Of a DNA stretch of 64,000 nucleotides, positions 2,701 through 53,410 are shown one piece after another. This stretch comes from Epiperipatus broadwayi (lineage: Eukaryota > Animalia > Onychophora), in assembly GCA_028023455.1 (NCBI GenBank), contig JAQFVV010000003.1, positions 5,890,001 through 5,954,000 on the forward strand, in the 5' to 3' direction. Within the stretch, counting starts at the first letter, position 1. Every line of letters starts with the position of its first letter. The position numbers and the translations under genes were made by a program. Under the pieces are notes generated by a model that was given only the letters and a program-made list of their open reading frames with translations, was not told the DNA's origin and searched no databases.

Positions 2701-5483
2701 AAATAATGGCAAACTGCCATTGATGATGATCAAGTAGTATCGTATCAATTGGCTAGAAATCTTATTGACTAGCTATTACTTCATCTACTTTTAAGACAAA
2801 AAAATATGACATATACAAAAAGAACAGCTATCAATGACGCACTGCCATAGATGATGAACAAGAATTATCAGTCAGATGTAGTATTTTACTTGTTTTTCTA
2901 CCTGAATTGAGTAGAAAACCTAACACATATACATAGATAATAAAAGCATATAGTGTAGAAGTTAGACTAGCTTGCTATGTCTATGACTTGGTGGTTATGT
3001 ACAGAGTACAATTTGAAAATTTTTTAAAATAGAGAAAAATTCCCCAAAATAGTTTTTTTTTTTTACTGATAGTCAACCCATAATCAAACCCTCTAACTCT
3101 ACAATCTTGAATGTATGTGTCTATATTTTCAACTAGAAATTATGCAACTTTAATTCCAAATGCACTGATCTTGTCTATTCTTTGGAACATATTAGTAGTT
3201 TGAAAACAGATAATGCAACTTGCACAAAATATTGATTGATACCTTGACCAGTAATGTCATTATAGTTTGCAAGACTCTAGAAAAAAAAAAATCAATATTA
3301 TTGAAAACATCTAATTACAAATACAGGATCTTGTTTCACACTTTATGCACCACTTAGACATGAAGTGAAAATAAAATTATTTTGGGGTAGGGAGAATGTT
3401 AAGAATAATGTGCTGATAATTAAATATTAATAAAATAAAGACTTGTATGTTCATTGTGAAGTACAATTATTTCATAAAATTTACTTTTTTTTATTCTGCA
3501 AATGATTAATTATAATTATAATTTGAAGTATCATATTTTATGTTATCTACATACAATAAAAGCTCTTAGATTTTATTTTATTAATTTTAATTTGAAAAAT
3601 AAACAAAAACAATTTCTGTTATATGTAAATACATAATATACAAATTTGATGATAAATTCAACCAATGTAAAATGCTTTAAAACATAAAACATTGTGACTA
3701 ATAAATATAAAATTTATTTGTTTAGAACTAAACAAACTATTATTATATAATTTACAGTGAATCTATAATATATATATATATAGTATATAATGCACTACTT
3801 CAGTTATACACTACATCAAAAAAATGTAAACAAACAAAAAAATGTAAATAAACAAAAAATAGAAACACTGAAATTCATAAAATTAATACATTTTATGGTA
3901 TAACAACAGCCATTTTTCTATTCTACACAATCACATTTATTAATATTTATTTAGGTACAAAAAAGCACATTTTATGATTTGTGTGATACAATATTTCATG
4001 TAATGAAATGTTTTCTAAGTATAAAGCTAAAAGTTTTATAAAATTTAAGAACAGTCATAAAATATTTTTCTCAAGCAATAAAATGAAAACTAGAATTATA
4101 GAACAGGAAAAACATATACAAAACATTATTGAATTGAATCAGAAAGCTTAATGTATGAAGAATTTAACTAAAAATTTAAAAAATGGCAAGTAGATATAAC
4201 TTTATAGTTCTGAGGATGATATGGACTTAAAAACAATTATGAGCCCATATTTGTTGATTACAAGACTGCTATAGAATTTCTATAGGAGGAAAAAGTTATT
4301 GAAGAAAAAAGATATTATAATAAAAGTTTAACACTTCACTATTCATTTTAACTTAAATAGTTCATCATCAACTACATTTCTTCAGAATTCTCTAATTCAC
4401 TTTCTTGTGGCTATCTATAGCACTATTTTTCCAATTTTGCTTTCATTTAATAGCAAAAACTAGAATTAAAATTTATAATGATTTATTAACTAAAAAAATC
4501 TGCAAAAGTAAATATTTTGTGGCTAAATGAGCCAATAATGCTATTGATTGGTAGATTCTATATTCTCAGGCTTTGAGAAGACTTATAAGAGTACTTGAAT
4601 TTTTCCTTTGTTACTTTGGGGGAAAATGTATATTTTCTGTAATTTATTTACATATTTGTGATTATTTTTCAAAAATATTTGTGAAATATTTTTAGACCAA
4701 AAATAATTATAATTATAGCTTGATTTTATTTGAAAAAGTTTATTTTTAGATAACAACTGAAGTGAAATTGTAATTATGGTAAAGCAGTAGTTATATATAA
4801 TTTTCTGAAAAATTAATGTTTCCATAAATAATAAAACAATTTTTTGTGATATTTTATCAATTATAAGTGCAATTTTAACTTTTAAAATAGAATTTCATTG
4901 ATTCATGATGTCTTACAATAATTCATTATATGTTAGAAATGGAGGACAAATGAGAAAAGGATCATAACTGGCTATGAATATGAGAAATACATCTTCATGA
5001 AAGCGCTTAGCCATTTAATTTAGTTTTCAATTTGTTGTTATAGCTTTACGTTGGAAGTGTGAAAGCACGATTTATTATTATATTGGTCAAATGTAAAGTA
5101 TAAATATACAGGTTATTACTTAATCTTATATGTGTATACTTATTTTCTAAACATTCCAAACTGAAATATTATCTTTTAGAATGTTTTTCATTTATAAACT
5201 TATATTTGAAATAAATAAGATAAAGATTAAAATAAAGATTAAAAAAATAAAGATATAAAATACTTAGTTTTTATTATTTTTATTTTTTGAATGAATGTGA
5301 ATAAATAAATTCACATAATAAATAAATATGTATATATACTTCTTCAGTTTATTATTAATAAGTACATTATTATTATTATAGGGATTTGAACCCAGACTTT
5401 CAAGCTCCCTTTAGTCATTCACTCTATCTTATTATACAAATGATAGCACATATCCATATACATCCAAAAAAGATAAATAATGT

Positions 5484-5525
5484 CCAATATACATATTTTG
5501 TACTGAGCCAGAACTCATCACTTGA
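5484..5525 (-). ncRNA. Degenerate minimal type I hammerhead ribozyme
   Basis: Minus strand: caa-GTGATGA-Gttctggctcagtac-AAAA-tatgta-ta-ttgg; C3 and G12 of the core are mutated. Confidence 0.5.
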
Positions 5526-5723
5526 TATAGATCATTGTCTCCCATACATATATATAATCAGTACTCAATTTATATTAAGATAGAAAACCTTCAAACTTTA
5601 ATGGATATGCTTCAATCTTCTCCATTCTCCAACTCTTCAGTCATCCATATCATTGAAAATCTGATGATATGTTCAAAGCACCAAGCACTGATTATATATG
5701 TGTATAGGAGATGATGATCTGGA

Positions 5724-5797
5724 CCAACTGATGAGTGCTGGTTCAGTATGAAATATATATATATATATATGGTTCAGTATGAAATATATATATTGAA
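5724..5797 (+). ncRNA. Minimal type I hammerhead ribozyme with intact core nucleotides
   Basis: CCAA-CTGATGA-GTGCT(ggttc)AGTAT-GAAA-(TA)n; a local duplication (ggttcagtatgaaatatata, second copy from 5771) separates the core from the TTGAAGATC stem I partner. Confidence 0.6.
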
Positions 5798-6057
5798 GAT
5801 CATTTATCTTTTTTGCATGTATGTGATTGTGTGTGTTGGTTATATAAGATGAAATGGATGACTAAAGAAGCTAAAAGTCTGGTTTAAATCTCCCTTAATT
5901 ACATCTAATTTAAAGTACATACACTATACATGTATTTAAATATTATCAATATTATATTGTTGTTGTTGTTATTATTATTAGAATTATTTTAATTTTGTTT
6001 ATACTATAATCTTAATTTATATATGTATACTATGAATACAAAAAGCATTTGATATAT

Positions 6058-6326
6058 ATATATAAAATACATATTTTGCGGGTTCATCCGTGTTAAAAAC
6101 TTTTAATATTAATATACTGACGTTTTGACTTGGTCACACAAGCTATCCACAGAGTTATTTTTAAAAATTTCCTCCCCGTAGAAGTTAATAATGTTAAAAC
6201 GAAGATTTGCACGGGTTAAATATATAAAATACATATTTTGTGGGTTCATCCATGTTAAAAACTTTTAATATTAATATACTGATGTTTCGACTTGGTCACA
6301 CAAGCCATCCAAATCTTCGTTTTAAC
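6058..6326 (-). repeat. 162-bp-period tandem repeat (about 1.6 units) with a short inverted tail, one HHR per unit
   Basis: 6058-6148 is repeated at 6220-6310 with few substitutions, mostly CpG transitions; 6311-6326 (aaatcttcgttttaac) is the reverse complement of gttaaaacgaagattt inside the unit. Confidence 0.85.
6114..6158 (-). ncRNA. Penelope-type minimal hammerhead variant (degenerate)
   Basis: Minus strand: ataact-CTGTGGA-T-agcttg(tgtgac)caagtc-AAAA-CG-TC-agtat; the second unit keeps ggcttg/caagtc-GAAA but is truncated before CTGA. Confidence 0.55.
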
Positions 6327-8934: not shown

Positions 8935-9060
8935 TGTATAAATATATACATATCTTTTCTACATGTGTGTGGTCATGTATATCAGTAGTATGAGATAGTT
9001 TGAATAGCTGAAGGTTGCTTGAAAGTCTGAGTTCAAATCCCCTACATCTACAATTAAATT
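8935..9060 (+). repeat. Partial, older copy of the distal arm of the 5378-5896 family
   Basis: Shares tatctttt..catgtgtgtgg and cttgaaagtctgagttcaaatccc with the 5378 family. Confidence 0.45.
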
Positions 9061-10041
9061 CCAGGTATAAGAATGCCTGCATTTCAAATCTTATAAATAT
9101 ATACATGCAAATTATCATTAGACATTAATAATCCTGACCTCCACAAACTCAAATTATATTTTTAAAATAATGGTTCAAAAACATTTTTGATTTCATAATT
9201 TCATCTTAGATCTATATTTTTTTTAATCCTTTTTGTCACTTAGCATATTTCAATAAAGTACTGCATAATCTATCTTTTGCTTGCATAAAATCTATATTTG
9301 ATAGCAGTAATTGATTTTCCTTACATAACTCTATTCACAAGATATCAGTGGATAACTAATAATAGTGCCCAGGATAATTTTAGATTTTGGATGCTTTAAC
9401 TAGAAAATATAGTCTTGTCACTGAATATGGTCATTCAGAAACAATTTCTATTCAAGCTAATAAACTAAAAATATTGAATTCAATGATATGGGCATTTAGG
9501 TTTTCAATTGGCACTCTATCAATAAACTTAGTTGTTGTTTTTTTTCTCTTTTTTTCTATTGTTCAACTCATCCTTATTAAAGTTAATTAGTACATCATTA
9601 ATACTATTCATTCTTTAGTGAAAATACATTTATGTCTTCATTTGTTTTTATTGTTTAAAAATTCATATTTTTTTTGCTAATCCATTAGTTTAAATAAATA
9701 AAAACAATAATGCTACAACAATTGAAAATAGTCCATTGAAAAATAAAAACCTGCCTAGAAGAGTTGAGATATAAGTAATAAAATACAGTATATGGTTTTC
9801 TAAATGTAACAGCTTTATTTGTTCAAAGATAATACTAAAATTACAAATAAATAAATACTGTGTATTTAGTTGATAAGAAGGTCAAATGAATGCTTGAGCA
9901 TCAAAGATTGATTTAGGAACTGATTTAAGAGCTTTTAATTCTCCAATCTATTATTATGCTAAACTTCACATGATATACTCAGATTATCAATTACTTGATT
10001 TAATTCTGCCAATATTAACTTCTATAAATGATATCACAGTA

Positions 10042-20100: not shown

Positions 20101-20449
20101 TTAAGCTATACTTAAGTATTGACAAAAGTTAACTTTAAATTGCTAGACTGCATCACTGAATTGTTGAGAAATACAATTTAAATTCAAAATATTAAAGATG
20201 GAAAAGATGAGAATTGATTTTATATATACAAGAAATATGGTAACTAAATAATGATTATTTTACAGACTATAATTAGAGCTTTCATATCTCTAGATTTTAT
20301 TTACATTATATCTTGGTACCTATAATTGAATGACTTCATTGTTCGGAAATTATTAAGTTTTAGAAATAACAGAACTGGAATCAATCTAAGGATCTTAGTT
20401 TCATAGTTTAACATTCTATAGCTGCAATAAATATGCAGGTAAATAGAGC

Positions 20450-20731
20450 GATTTGAACCCAGGATTTTCCAGACTATTAATCCTTCACTCTATTTCAAGA
20501 AACTAATAAACATGACTATATATATATATGATCTCCAATATATATTTTGTGCAGAACCAGCACTCATCAGTTGGGCAATATCTTAATCTCTCACAGATGT
20601 ATATAATCCAGCATGAGGGTTATATTAAGATAGCGATTCCTCAAACTTTAATGGACAGTCTTCAATCTTCTCACTCTTCCAACTATTCAACTGTGCATTT
20701 CATTGAAAAACTGATGATGGAATACTCAAAG
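20450..20731 (-). mobile_element. Single copy of the HHR-bearing repeat family
   Basis: Colinear with 5382-5680 (gatttgaacccag..., ccagcactcatcag, ctcaaactttaatggac..cttcaatcttctc, cattgaaaa.ctgatgat). Confidence 0.8.
20535..20574 (-). ncRNA. Minimal type I hammerhead ribozyme, one core substitution (G12A)
   Basis: Minus strand: CCAA-CTGATGA-GTGC(tggttct)GCAC-AAAA-TATA-TA-TTGG: stem I CCAA/TTGG, perfect stem II, palindromic ATATAT in place of stem III. Confidence 0.65.
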
Positions 20732-21307
20732 GTGTTGGATTTGATATTATAATCATACCAATATAGACACTAATAATAAAATGAGTTTATATATTTCTGC
20801 CTTGGGTAGTGTTTAACCACACTGAATTAGGGTGGTTTATAAAAAAAAACTATATTGCTTAATGTTCATATTTTAATATCCACTTTGTCTGTTTACTTTT
20901 ATTCATGTACGATAAACAATCACTATATTTTCATGAAATCCTTAAAGATGATGTGCGAAGACATTTGAAATTGAGAGTTATTTTTGAAATGTATATTTTG
21001 CAGAAAAATTAATCAGTTATAAAATGATAAAAAGATAAAAAATATTTCATGTATTGTAATTAAAGCTTCCATCATTCCAAATTTTTATATATCAACCAGT
21101 TAATGTATTGAGTTCATTCTCAAAACTTTAAAGAATAGGTGATTCCACTCTATTTTTAATCCTTTGTCAATTAAATGTTAATTATTCATAATCTGAGGAG
21201 AGAGCAGTTTATTCTATTAAAAATATTTTTAAAATACAAAAAAAGAATATAACTTAGAATTAAGAAATCATCTTTAAAAAAAAATCGTTTTTAACATTAT
21301 GATTAAA

Positions 21308-50822: not shown

Positions 50823-53319
50823 CTGTTTTAATAACAGTTACAAGCAAGCATAAGAACTGGTGCTTATGTGATGTTTATTGGTTTAATAATATTATTACAT
50901 TATTCCTTTTATTTTCTTTTAAATTAAGTAAATATATATGCTAAAAATATATATTTTATTACCCAGATGCCTCATCAAGATTGAAATTGCATATGTGAAT
51001 AATAATAATTATATTAGAAATAGTTAATGTATTCGTATAAAAAAAAATACAAAATATAAATACATACCTTACTCTAAAGTAAACCCTTATATGATATTTA
51101 GAGTATGTGGTTTAATATCAAGGGGGAAAGATGATATTGGTTAATGAGCAATAAGTGAGAGAAAGAAAAAACAAAAATATTTATAGATGTTTATGAATGT
51201 AGTGACAAAATAAATATTTATTTTTAATCCTTATTCTTTTATTCTTTGTCTCTTGTCTTTTAACTTTTTCCACCAAAATATAGCTATGCAAAAAACTGAC
51301 ACTTTGAGCCAGCGATAATAATTCTTGGGATGATTTTTCTTACTTCACATTTTTTCACAGAGTTTAAAAAATATATTTCCCATTTATTAACAGAGTTTTA
51401 AAATGAATTTCCAATTTGTTCATAAAGTTTTAAATGAATTCTCAATCCATTGATCACTCCTATACAATTTATGATTAAACAATTTTTTCCATGTTGTTTT
51501 AAAAAAATTATGGATTTTTCGAGTTAACAAAATGGGTTGTGATATTTATTCAATGATTATTCCATAATTAACTGGTCATTCTCAGTAAATCTCTTTTCTT
51601 GGTAGGGCACAATTATGACTTCATTTTGACAGAGCTGGAATGGAGCAATTCCATTTTTTCCTTCATGCTAGGTCATGCAGGTTCAACAACTTTATTTTTT
51701 TCTTCCATGGAGCACCATGATAGTCAGCAGTGGATTATAAGTTTTATTAGCAGATCATTTGTTTAAAATTTAATTTTCATATTCTCTCCAAAATGTAGTA
51801 TGATTTACTTAAAAAAATTTATTGGCAACCCTGTTTATAACTTATCAAATTTAATTACTTCAATCCAACCCTCTATAAGGTGTTTATTAATAAATAGCAT
51901 AACTAAAACACCTTCCATACAATCATTAACAATTTTTGCTTTTTAAAAAGCACAGGAAAGAAAACATCATGATAATTAATCATTATCAGAAATAGAAAAT
52001 GGGAAGACAGAAAAAATTAAAAAAATATTATTTTTTAATAACATAAACATTCTGAAATTCCACATTTTTATAATAACTTAATTAAAACTTCTATAGCACA
52101 ATTGATAACTTTAAGAAACTATTTCTCTTCCTTTTTCATTTTTTTCAGATTAATTTTACAAACTAGTTTTGTTTTTTTTTTTTTTTTTTTGTATAGAAAT
52201 ATTTGTTTGAGATCAAATGTGAAGAAATTCATACTCCATACTCACACATACTCCATAATTGAACAAAGTTAACCCTTTATTTATTAAGGTTTTAGAATAA
52301 AGAAGAAAATGCTATTAATTATTAGCATCTTATTTAATGCAGAGTTTAGAATTAAAATGCTGTTATTAGCTTTCATATTTGTTATTTACATTTAATGCTT
52401 GATGTATCTATGCATAACTATGACATATATATATATGTATGTGTGTAAATGGTGTTTAATGTAAAGTTTAATCGATTAAGTCATATAATACATAATATTA
52501 TTATAATCAAGACTAATAAATTCCTCAACTTAACAATAGATGTGCATCTTGGATATTGGTTATTCATCATATGACCACAGAATAAGCTTAAAATGTTTGG
52601 AAACAGTCATGAGTTAGATACACACTAAGAATTAATTTAAAAGACTGAATATAAAAATTCATAAGACATTTTACATTAAGTTCCCCCAAACACCCAAAAT
52701 GCAGATCAGTGGCCAAATGCCATGAAAACAAAATTATCATGTAATCATAAAAGTAATTTAATATGAAAAAAACTTAATCTAAAAGTCTGCCTAAAAAAAA
52801 AACTGATCGAATTTGATTCATTCCAACAAACTTTCTAGAATAAATAAACTATAGTACAAAGTCTAATCTAATAATAAATACAAACATATAACTTCCTCTG
52901 TTCTATTTTATTTTAGGAAGTTTACTAGTATAAATTAAGTAGTTTTCTATATTAAAATAGTTTTTATGTTTAGTGGTTAATGCATTTACTTTTCGTTCCT
53001 TAAAATATAAGCTCCAGAAAAATTCAAGTTAAATAAGAACAATAATCAACATCAAATAAATCAGTATACAGTTATTTTTAGTTAGAAGGCAAAACAAAAA
53101 TAAAAAACTACTTATGTCCCCAATACTCAGCAGTTGTCAATGCTGAGAATGTAATATTTTCTTTCACTAATTTTCTTTATGGTAGACGGGAGGGGGTGAA
53201 GAGGTATAGTTATTTAAAGGCTATAACATATGCAAATAAACTTTAAGTAAGACAGATTGCAATCCATGGTCAATTTTAACATTATTTAAATGCAAGTATA
53301 TTGTCTATACTGAACTTAA

Positions 53320-53410
53320 TGTATGTGGTTATGTGTATAAGTTGTACATGATGGAGTGGATAGCTATAGGGATCTTGAAAGTCTGAGTTCAAACCCCTTC
53401 TAATTTTAAC
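53320..53410 (+). repeat. Partial copy of the distal arm of the 5378-5896 family
   Basis: gtatgtggttatgtgtataag...gatcttgaaagtctgagttcaaacccc. Confidence 0.45.

Follow-up and report, generated by a model that had tools for sequence, protein, structure and literature searches.

Background

A 64,000-nucleotide stretch of the genome of the onychophoran Epiperipatus broadwayi (NCBI GenBank assembly GCA_028023455.1, contig JAQFVV010000003.1, positions 5,890,001 to 5,954,000 of the forward strand; hereafter the window) contains scattered repeat copies in which a hammerhead-like string is followed by a word resembling the B box of an RNA polymerase III (Pol III) promoter. What kind of element left these copies behind, was the hammerhead ever a ribozyme, and does the word belong to a promoter? 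The sequence-only reading of the window had proposed a non-coding, non-autonomous retroelement family that couples a minimal hammerhead ribozyme to Pol III transcription. Comparison with the whole 5.6-Gb assembly bears out the first half of that proposal, as both the founder motif and the insertion anatomy support a non-coding, non-autonomous, ribozyme-bearing retroelement family, and speaks against the second. The window holds five decayed (fossil) insertions of this abundant non-coding mobile element, which is very probably a non-long terminal repeat (non-LTR) retrozyme, i.e., a non-autonomous derivative of Penelope-like elements (PLEs), because its insertion anatomy is the one published for PLEs and because PLEs are abundant in the same genome.

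The class itself has already been described. The definition of animal non-LTR retrozymes goes back to Cervera & de la Pena 2020 (PMC7229834), and such elements have recently been argued to be non-autonomous PLE derivatives, linked to the pseudo-LTRs (pLTRs) of PLEs (Li, Clavereau & Pollet 2026, bioRxiv 10.64898/2026.07.22.740005). The present family adds two things. It provides a worked case in which apparent “variant” ribozymes in single copies are plain CpG decay of a canonical founder, and its copy-end statistics place a retrozyme family squarely within the Penelope insertion mechanism, with two start sites, a one-ended tail, a strong bias in the orientation of adjacent copies (33:0) and target duplications around whole composites.

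Family abundance and the founder motif

A DNA search of the 5.6-Gb assembly with window positions 20440–20740 returned at least 6,137 first-look candidates; those that were scored have about 80% identity. With motif patterns, matches numbered in the thousands as opposed to none for the reversed controls, so that the repeats are real and far beyond chance. The majority sequence of 46 aligned genomic copies reads GATCTGGCCCAACTGATGAGTGCTGGTTCTGCA(T/C)(G/A)AAATA(T/C)(G/A)TATATTGGGGATC, with the layout CTGATGA, GTGC...GCA, (T/C)(G/A)AAA, TA(T/C)(G/A)TATA and TTGGGG. At both variable sites each aligned copy shows either TG or CA, and copies carry TAYRTATA and GCAYRAAA, which are both decay products of CpG. 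The 44-mer in which the CpGs are restored, CCCAACTGATGAGTGCTGGTTCTGCACGAAATACGTATATTGGG, occurs in the genome three times exactly and 177 times within two mismatches (reversed control 0). Because the TG and CA decay products and the surviving exact motif are found for both sites, the founder, as reconstructed from its copies, had GCAC-GAAA and, as stem III, the 8-nt palindrome AUACGUAU with a UACGUA core. The “all-AU palindrome” that the sequence-only reading had seen replacing the usual GC-containing one is CpG decay of AUACGUAU, the exact CpG-restored motif of which persists in the genome. The consensus put forward in that reading agrees in its core with the genome-wide majority, but as written it is a composite stitched from three decayed copies; the genome-wide consensus contains CTGATGA and, after CpG decay is read back, GAAA too.

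The extent of this decay was counted by hand in 100 copies picked by their flanks alone. The C11.1–G12 site reads TG in 49, CA in 27, CG in 9 and TA in 9 of them, and the stem III site TG in 35, CA in 34, CG in 10 and TA in 9. The excess of TG over CA at the C11.1–G12 site (p ~0.01) may be a hint that a source copy with a tolerated G–U pair kept amplifying, whereas a G12→A copy could not. Two subfamilies are told apart by loop 2, which is UGGUUCU or UGGUUCA. A 32-mer pattern with the TGGTTCA variant has 27,128 matches within one mismatch and one with the TGGTTCT variant 6,111; these counts overlap because the patterns differ by a single letter, and copy counts from pattern searches are lower bounds. 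With tens of thousands of motif matches, the family is a genuine ribozyme-bearing mobile element that accounts for a noticeable part of this 5.6-Gb animal genome. Its copies are old, at about 72–90% identity to the family majority sequence. A literature text search for the ribozyme sequence gave no match.

Two side observations concern the ribozyme block. In a single public run, which is either RNA or low-coverage DNA, the summed contig depth reaches ~19,000 on the block (L032:1429–1632) versus 0–13 on unique flanks; most of this depth comes from the TGGTTCA/GCAT variant, and some contigs end in Illumina adapter about 20 nt before the ribozyme. Separately, the AUG inside CUGAUGA begins a frame of about 50 codons that, once CpG decay is reversed in the sequence, is open to the short 3' end in both subfamilies (e.g., L032:1508–1660), recalling the anole PLE, in which the open reading frame (ORF) begins at helix II. 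Coding is not claimed for this candidate ORF remnant; the subfamilies shift frame after about 30 codons.

Ribozyme architecture

Read as RNA, the founder CCCAA-CUGAUGA-GUGC-loop-GCAC-GAAA-UACGUAU-A/UUGGG is a canonical type I hammerhead of the metazoan form. Its helix I, CCCAA/UUGGG, can be extended by GAUC/GAUC, the core is CUGAUGA, helix II comprises the 4 bp GUGC/GCAC, and helix III consists only of the 8-nt palindrome, followed by A17, with the cut predicted between ...GUAUA and UUGGG. In metazoan hammerheads of type I, helix I spans about 6 bp, helix II spans 4 bp, helix III is short and palindromic, and the active form is a dimer (PMC4209133). The genome-wide founder thus upholds what had been assigned from the window letters, namely a type I hammerhead in its minimal form, with a palindrome as stem III, such as is found alongside Penelope-like elements and metazoan retrozymes. 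The CUGANGA...GAAA...H core is satisfied by the founder and by natural intact copies, and is broken in two of the three ribozyme copies of the window (G12→A in both, with C3→G also in one). The Rfam Hammerhead_1 model (RF00163), whose helix III is likewise a loopless palindrome, aligns over its full length (model positions 1–45) with an intact copy, and all core positions agree. In folding predictions, the monomer forms helices I and II, and the dimer adds an 8-bp intermolecular helix III, with a predicted −27.9 kcal/mol for the dimer versus 2 × −9.9 kcal/mol for two monomers. Since one molecule alone cannot close helix III, cutting is expected to require the pairing of two copies, which may lie in one tandem transcript or in separate molecules.

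A descriptor run over the gathered DNA found two further hammerheads that are unrelated to this family and have the same layout with different helices. Family C, CUGAGGA-GUGC-CAAA-GCAC-GAAA-CCAUGG-UC, has 18,314 matches within two mismatches, many of them exact with intact CpG, and scores 30.3 bits (E 9e-6) against Hammerhead_1. Family D, CUGACGA-AGGUU-ACA-AGCCU-GAAA-CUAGU-C, has a unit of about 407 nt.

These families bear on the question of whether the hammerhead-like string could be a coincidence within an ordinary repeat, such as a short interspersed element (SINE), a miniature inverted-repeat transposable element (MITE) or a satellite, and never have been catalytic. In favor of coincidence, the window retains no intact copy, the Rfam score lies below gathering, and the core is conserved no more than at the neutral level. 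However, the founder meets all core positions, the three helices and the dimer-type palindrome together, the architecture recurs with other helices in at least two abundant families of the genome, and no other stretch is as well conserved between the two subfamilies as the ribozyme block, at 93–100% identity. We therefore regard a chance motif as extremely unlikely.

Copy ends and insertion anatomy

All copies map onto a multimer of a circularly continuous, non-coding unit of about 508 nt with a GC content of 34%. No fixed 5' end emerged on extending the alignments, and the sequence beyond some 3' ends runs into the 5' part of the next unit. Anatomy statistics were based on 132 mapped copies, with unit positions counted from the predicted cut site, so that the ribozyme occupies positions 465–508. 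The 3' ends cluster at unit positions 111–120 (31 copies) and 161–180 (21 copies), i.e., copies end roughly 115 nt beyond the cut site, or roughly 165 nt beyond it when an optional tail of about 45–50 nt is present, while the 5' starts are scattered over the whole unit. The tail is found in both subfamilies, and the sister subfamily has the same short and tailed ends. Twenty-five copies are longer than one unit, with a maximum of 1,406 nt (2.8 units).

Adjacent copies are joined head-to-head in 33 pairs, tail-to-tail in none and on the same strand in two. One short and one tailed outer end are combined in 16 of the 21 classifiable head-to-head pairs (50% expected, p 0.017), and single copies seldom have the tail (7 long vs 38 short ends). 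At the loci L033, L023 and L026, whole composites lie between target duplications of 14, 12 and 11 bp, respectively, and because these enclose both arms each composite represents one insertion event; an 11-bp duplication also surrounds a single copy at L021. Over all insertions the longest shared flank word is at least 11 in 4.5%, compared with 0.5% in controls, a weakly positive outcome of a test that is weakened by imprecise BLAST boundaries in AT-rich flanks, the individual cases being clear. Most copies cross the cut site, and the RNA templates were therefore uncut or re-ligated. Such cut-site-spanning copies bear on whether transposition passes through linear or circular RNA, and copy anatomy does not tell apart a circle and a tandem transcript as the template.

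The inverted arrangement could also recall a foldback or MITE-type DNA transposon, in which case the inverted repeat at 5371–5945 would be the terminal inverted repeats used by a transposase. The inverted arms of this repeat are indeed long (79 nt at 82% and 64 nt at 81% complementarity), its two outer ends bear the same terminal sequence, and target duplications are present. Yet the inner junctions of the pairs differ in unit position from one locus to the next, many single arms occur with scattered 5' starts, some copies reach 2.8 tandem units, the outer ends usually differ by the ~50-nt tail, and the duplications vary between 11 and 14 bp. Junctions, units and ends that vary in this way are unlike the cut-and-paste of a fixed element, and we rejected this explanation as scarcely credible.

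A proposed Penelope-type insertion mechanism

PLE insertions are highly 5'-truncated and often partial tandems (Craig et al. 2021, PMC8557442). An inverted 5'-truncated copy often adjoins their 5' end, and they have a tail of 30–40 bp, often at one end only (PMC8557442). In vitro, a PLE enzyme was shown to initiate reverse transcription within the RNA, at two neighboring sites that lie about 110 nt into the ORF and shortly past the hammerhead (Frangieh et al. 2024, PMC11167929), so that the tail is the stretch between the two start sites; both strands of the DNA are cut and extended, AT-rich targets are preferred, and the RNA used is mainly uncleaved (PMC11167929). As judged by comparison of the copies with these accounts, the published insertion marks all appear in the present family except the ORF. 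The 5' truncation, the partial tandems, the adjacent inverted 5'-truncated copy, the optional and mostly one-ended tail and the AT-rich targets are shared, and the family's hammerhead lies about 100 nt upstream of where copies end. In contrast to PLEs, the family has no ORF for a reverse transcriptase (RT) and GIY-YIG endonuclease and is hence non-autonomous; its tail is about 45–50 bp rather than 30–40 bp, and its hammerhead is of the “canonical metazoan” form rather than the minimal hammerhead ribozyme with a 7–8 bp helix II of many PLE pLTRs.

A search of the genome for GIY-YIG gave 10,242 first-look candidates, several of them with open frames of 870–900 aa. One of these loci, L077 (G000:C12394:20944001–20951000), is an apparently intact tandem PLE with units of 3,135 bp that are 98.7% identical, and its two ORFs of 875–877 aa contain RVT_1 and, at their C terminus, a GIY-YIG domain, as found by a Pfam scan of the ORF in two pieces (a scan of the whole ORF returned nothing).

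The following course of events would account for the anatomy. A partner PLE, which we infer to exist in this genome, would supply its enzyme (reverse transcriptase and GIY-YIG endonuclease) in trans, and the RNA of the family would be copied by target-primed reverse transcription. Synthesis would begin inside the RNA at one of two neighboring sites, about 115 and 165 nt past the cut site, and run for variable distances, often beyond the ribozyme and sometimes beyond one unit. Both strands of the target DNA would often serve as primers, so that two copies come to lie head-to-head, with a short outer end on one and a tailed outer end on the other, flanked by a duplication of 11–14 bp. Once inserted, copies decay neutrally, the methylated CpGs first and among them the C11.1–G12 step of the ribozyme, which explains why the window copies are dead.

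The family also resembles metazoan non-LTR retrozymes in being a non-coding, AT-rich repeat that lacks LTR, PBS and PPT, in its canonical type I hammerhead, whose helix II has 4 bp and whose helix III is a short palindrome, in the existence of head-to-tail multimers and in the coexistence of PLEs, and its unit of 508 nt falls inside their range of 51–972 bp (bioRxiv 10.64898/2026.07.22.740005). Several results nevertheless weigh against assigning it to them. The majority of copies are fragments below one unit and the others reach one to three units, unlike the long tandem arrays typical of retrozymes, and the copies are old. Among copies, the core positions are no better conserved than their neighbors, which is expected of dead copies and gives no sign of present function. 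The intact copy scores 18.5 bits against Hammerhead_1 (E 0.11), below the Rfam gathering cut-off of 34 bits. Within the family there is no covariation in stem II, both subfamilies sharing GUGC/GCAC. The “highly self-paired” RNA that characterizes retrozymes was not seen in one 494-nt unit (L064:5093–5586), which folds at −107 kcal/mol with a z-score of −0.25 relative to shuffles, although this copy is decayed and the test a weak one. Retrozymes are expressed as unit-length RNAs, both linear and circular; for the present family, self-cleavage and RNA circles are predictions. Finally, the autonomous partner was not found, one PLE (L077) having been read: L077, including its spacer of about 500 nt, has neither a CTGANGA...GAAA motif nor a canonical hammerhead and no similarity to the family, so that the comparison yielded no sequence link to a particular PLE, and a tblastn search with the L077 ORF gave no match among the genome stretches gathered in this analysis.

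The B-box-like word and Pol III

The B-box-like word noticed in the window is real, since GGTTCAAATCCC occurs there three times with at most one mismatch compared with 0.13 occurrences expected. Its majority form in the family is AGTTCAAATCC (unit positions 91–101), with one mismatch to the B box and the invariant B-box letters G53, T55, C56, A58 and C61 kept. It lies about 90–100 nt past the predicted cut site and at the 3' terminus of the element, 10–20 nt before copies end. Between the subfamilies the word is an island conserved at 11 of 11 positions in surroundings that are about 60% identical, and for this reason it probably matters.

One explanation for it is that the family is a tRNA-derived Pol III SINE with a hammerhead, like Sm-alpha of Schistosoma, and that GGTTCAAATCCC is the B box of an internal promoter. 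Sm-alpha and newt satellite 2 share with the family a type I hammerhead carried by short repeats, interspersed or in tandem (a comparison made by description only). The newt satellite 2 hammerhead needs a dimer, and that of Sm-alpha sits in a SINE-like element whose Pol III promoter lies in a tRNA-like 5' head. The retention of all invariant B-box positions and the conservation between subfamilies fit this explanation, as does an AGTGG about 36 nt upstream of the word, at tRNA-like spacing. However, the word is 3'-terminal and not in a 5' head, and, unlike Sm-alpha, the family shows neither an A box nor a tRNA fold: the best A-box candidate in the unit has three mismatches in nine specified positions, ARAGORN found no tRNA in the window, and Rfam at E ≤ 10 found none in three stretches holding the 3' module. 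Runs of five T (T5) at unit positions 17 and 336 of the ribozyme strand precede the ribozyme, and Pol III would therefore stop before reaching it. In addition, no comparable word follows the ribozyme of the younger family C within about 130 nt, the copies of the present family lack an A-rich or simple-repeat tail, and the head-to-head and tail anatomy is that of PLEs and not that of SINEs mobilized by long interspersed elements (LINEs). The proposed coupling of the hammerhead to a Pol III B box is thus not sustained, and we consider a Pol III SINE very unlikely.

With the family read as a PLE-dependent retrozyme, we interpret the GTTCAAATCCC word as probably part of the region in which the RT recognizes the 3' part of the RNA and initiates, and not as a promoter. 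For the 3' module, RNAalifold run on 12 copies returned no consensus pairing and so lends no support to a 3' stem-loop. A more specific variant, which seems unlikely, is that the GTTCAAATCCC 3' module is active in its own right, either by mimicking a tRNA T arm and so recruiting the Penelope enzyme, or by serving as a working TFIIIC/Pol III entry point through which a retrozyme in tandem copies drives its own transcription, and that, in addition, the two strands are primed at different RNA sites. If the rule of one short and one tailed end holds true, the two target strands would be primed at different sites of the RNA in vivo, which the in vitro work did not see.

State of the copies in the window

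The three hammerhead copies reported in the sequence-only reading are present where they had been placed, with boundaries that are here 5483–5526 (−), 5723–5797 (+) and 20532–20575 (−). As read from the letters and by comparison with the founder 44-mer, none of the three keeps an intact hammerhead. In line with this, Rfam found neither hammerhead nor tRNA, be it at gathering score in the whole window or at E ≤ 10 in 5200–6100 and 20300–20900. The features are listed in Table 1.

Table 1. Remnants of the hammerhead-bearing family in the window (positions are those of the 64,000-nt stretch)
Feature	Position	Strand	Details
Left arm of head-to-head composite, 5'-truncated	5371–5679	−	Unit ~314 to ~112 (mapping onto the 508-nt unit multimer)
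B-box-like word GGTTCAAATCCC	5381–5392	−	Exact match at the 3' terminus of the left arm; unit positions 91–101
Dead hammerhead remnant	5483–5526	−	GTGATGA (C3→G); CAAAA for CGAAA (G12→A); U-U mismatch in stem II
Right arm of composite, 5'-truncated, TGGTTCA subfamily	5684 to ~5945	+	Start at ~unit position 431
Hammerhead remnant	5723–5797	+	CTGATGA and GAAA core kept; stem II GUGC/GUAU (two G-U pairs)
Decayed B-box-like word GGTTTAAATCTCCC	5882–5895	+	Near the 3' end of the right arm; within inverted repeat I6
Severely 5'-truncated copy with long tail	8951–9095	+	Start ~13 nt past the cut site, hence without ribozyme
5'-truncated copy, TGGTTCT subfamily, short 3' end	20437–20776	−	Unit ~271 to ~110
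Hammerhead remnant	20532–20575	−	CTGATGA-GTGC-TGGTTCT-GCAC kept; AAAA for GAAA (G12→A, GCACAAAA); stem III minus 2 nt
Short 5'-truncated copy, 3' module only, ending ...GAGTTCAAACCCCTTCTAATTTT	53318–53400 (approx.)	+	Assigned by eye against the family B 3' module

The stretch 5371–5945 is a single long inverted repeat of two copies joined head-to-head, with a short left end and a tailed right end. Its left arm, for which nhmmer gives a match at 5698–5375 (E 1e-46), terminates in the short 3' form ...GGGTTCAAATCCCTA, and the ribozyme remnant inside it differs from the founder 44-mer by 10 mismatches. The right arm carries the optional tail TTAATTACATCTAAT...ACATGTATTTAAAT, as seen by comparing it with the tails of L031 and the family B rows; its right boundary is approximate, a weak BLAST extension reaching 6029. 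The plus-strand remnant in this arm, which is found among the genome matches of the TGGTTCA pattern as C3:5895724, has (TA)n in place of stem III, a 31-bp tandem duplication (5739–5762 = 5770–5793) and a 3' strand of stem I that is decayed to TTGA. The (TA)n run at 5754–5770 that had been described as an expansion within the family is there, but it is a private change of this one decayed copy.

For the minus-strand copy at 20437–20776, nhmmer gives E 2e-76 and the mapping onto the unit 82% identity. The B-box-like words at about 9030 and 53385 that had been thought to stand alone belong to 5'-truncated family copies, at 8951–9095 and about 53318–53400, respectively. The latter, in which the site near 53385 reads GAGTTCAAACCCC, fell under the BLAST threshold.

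Just beyond the tailed end of the composite, a different repeat begins, of which window positions 6058–6326 contain two copies about 167 bp apart, ...ATATAAAATACATATTTTGYGGGTTCATCC...CTGAYGTTTYGACTTGGTCACACAAGC...; its minus strand includes ...GACCAAGTCGAAACATCAG..., a hammerhead-like variant.

Other hammerhead families in the genome

The Penelope-type insertion plan is also seen in family D. At L065:1599–2290 (G000:C1, ~144,028–144,719) a family D insertion is nested in a family B copy with a 13-bp target duplication, TTGTATGAGATAG, and base-exact boundaries. It consists of a tailed inverted arm followed by about 1.4 direct units of 407 nt that end short, and is a base-exact example of the plan. 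Family C is younger and forms arrays with a period of 435 bp that often switch strand head-to-head (e.g., C2:8803464–8807414). At L046:2799–2940 (G000:C6250), two family C copies are joined head-to-head inside the ribozyme, which results in a near-perfect hairpin with spurious microRNA matches.

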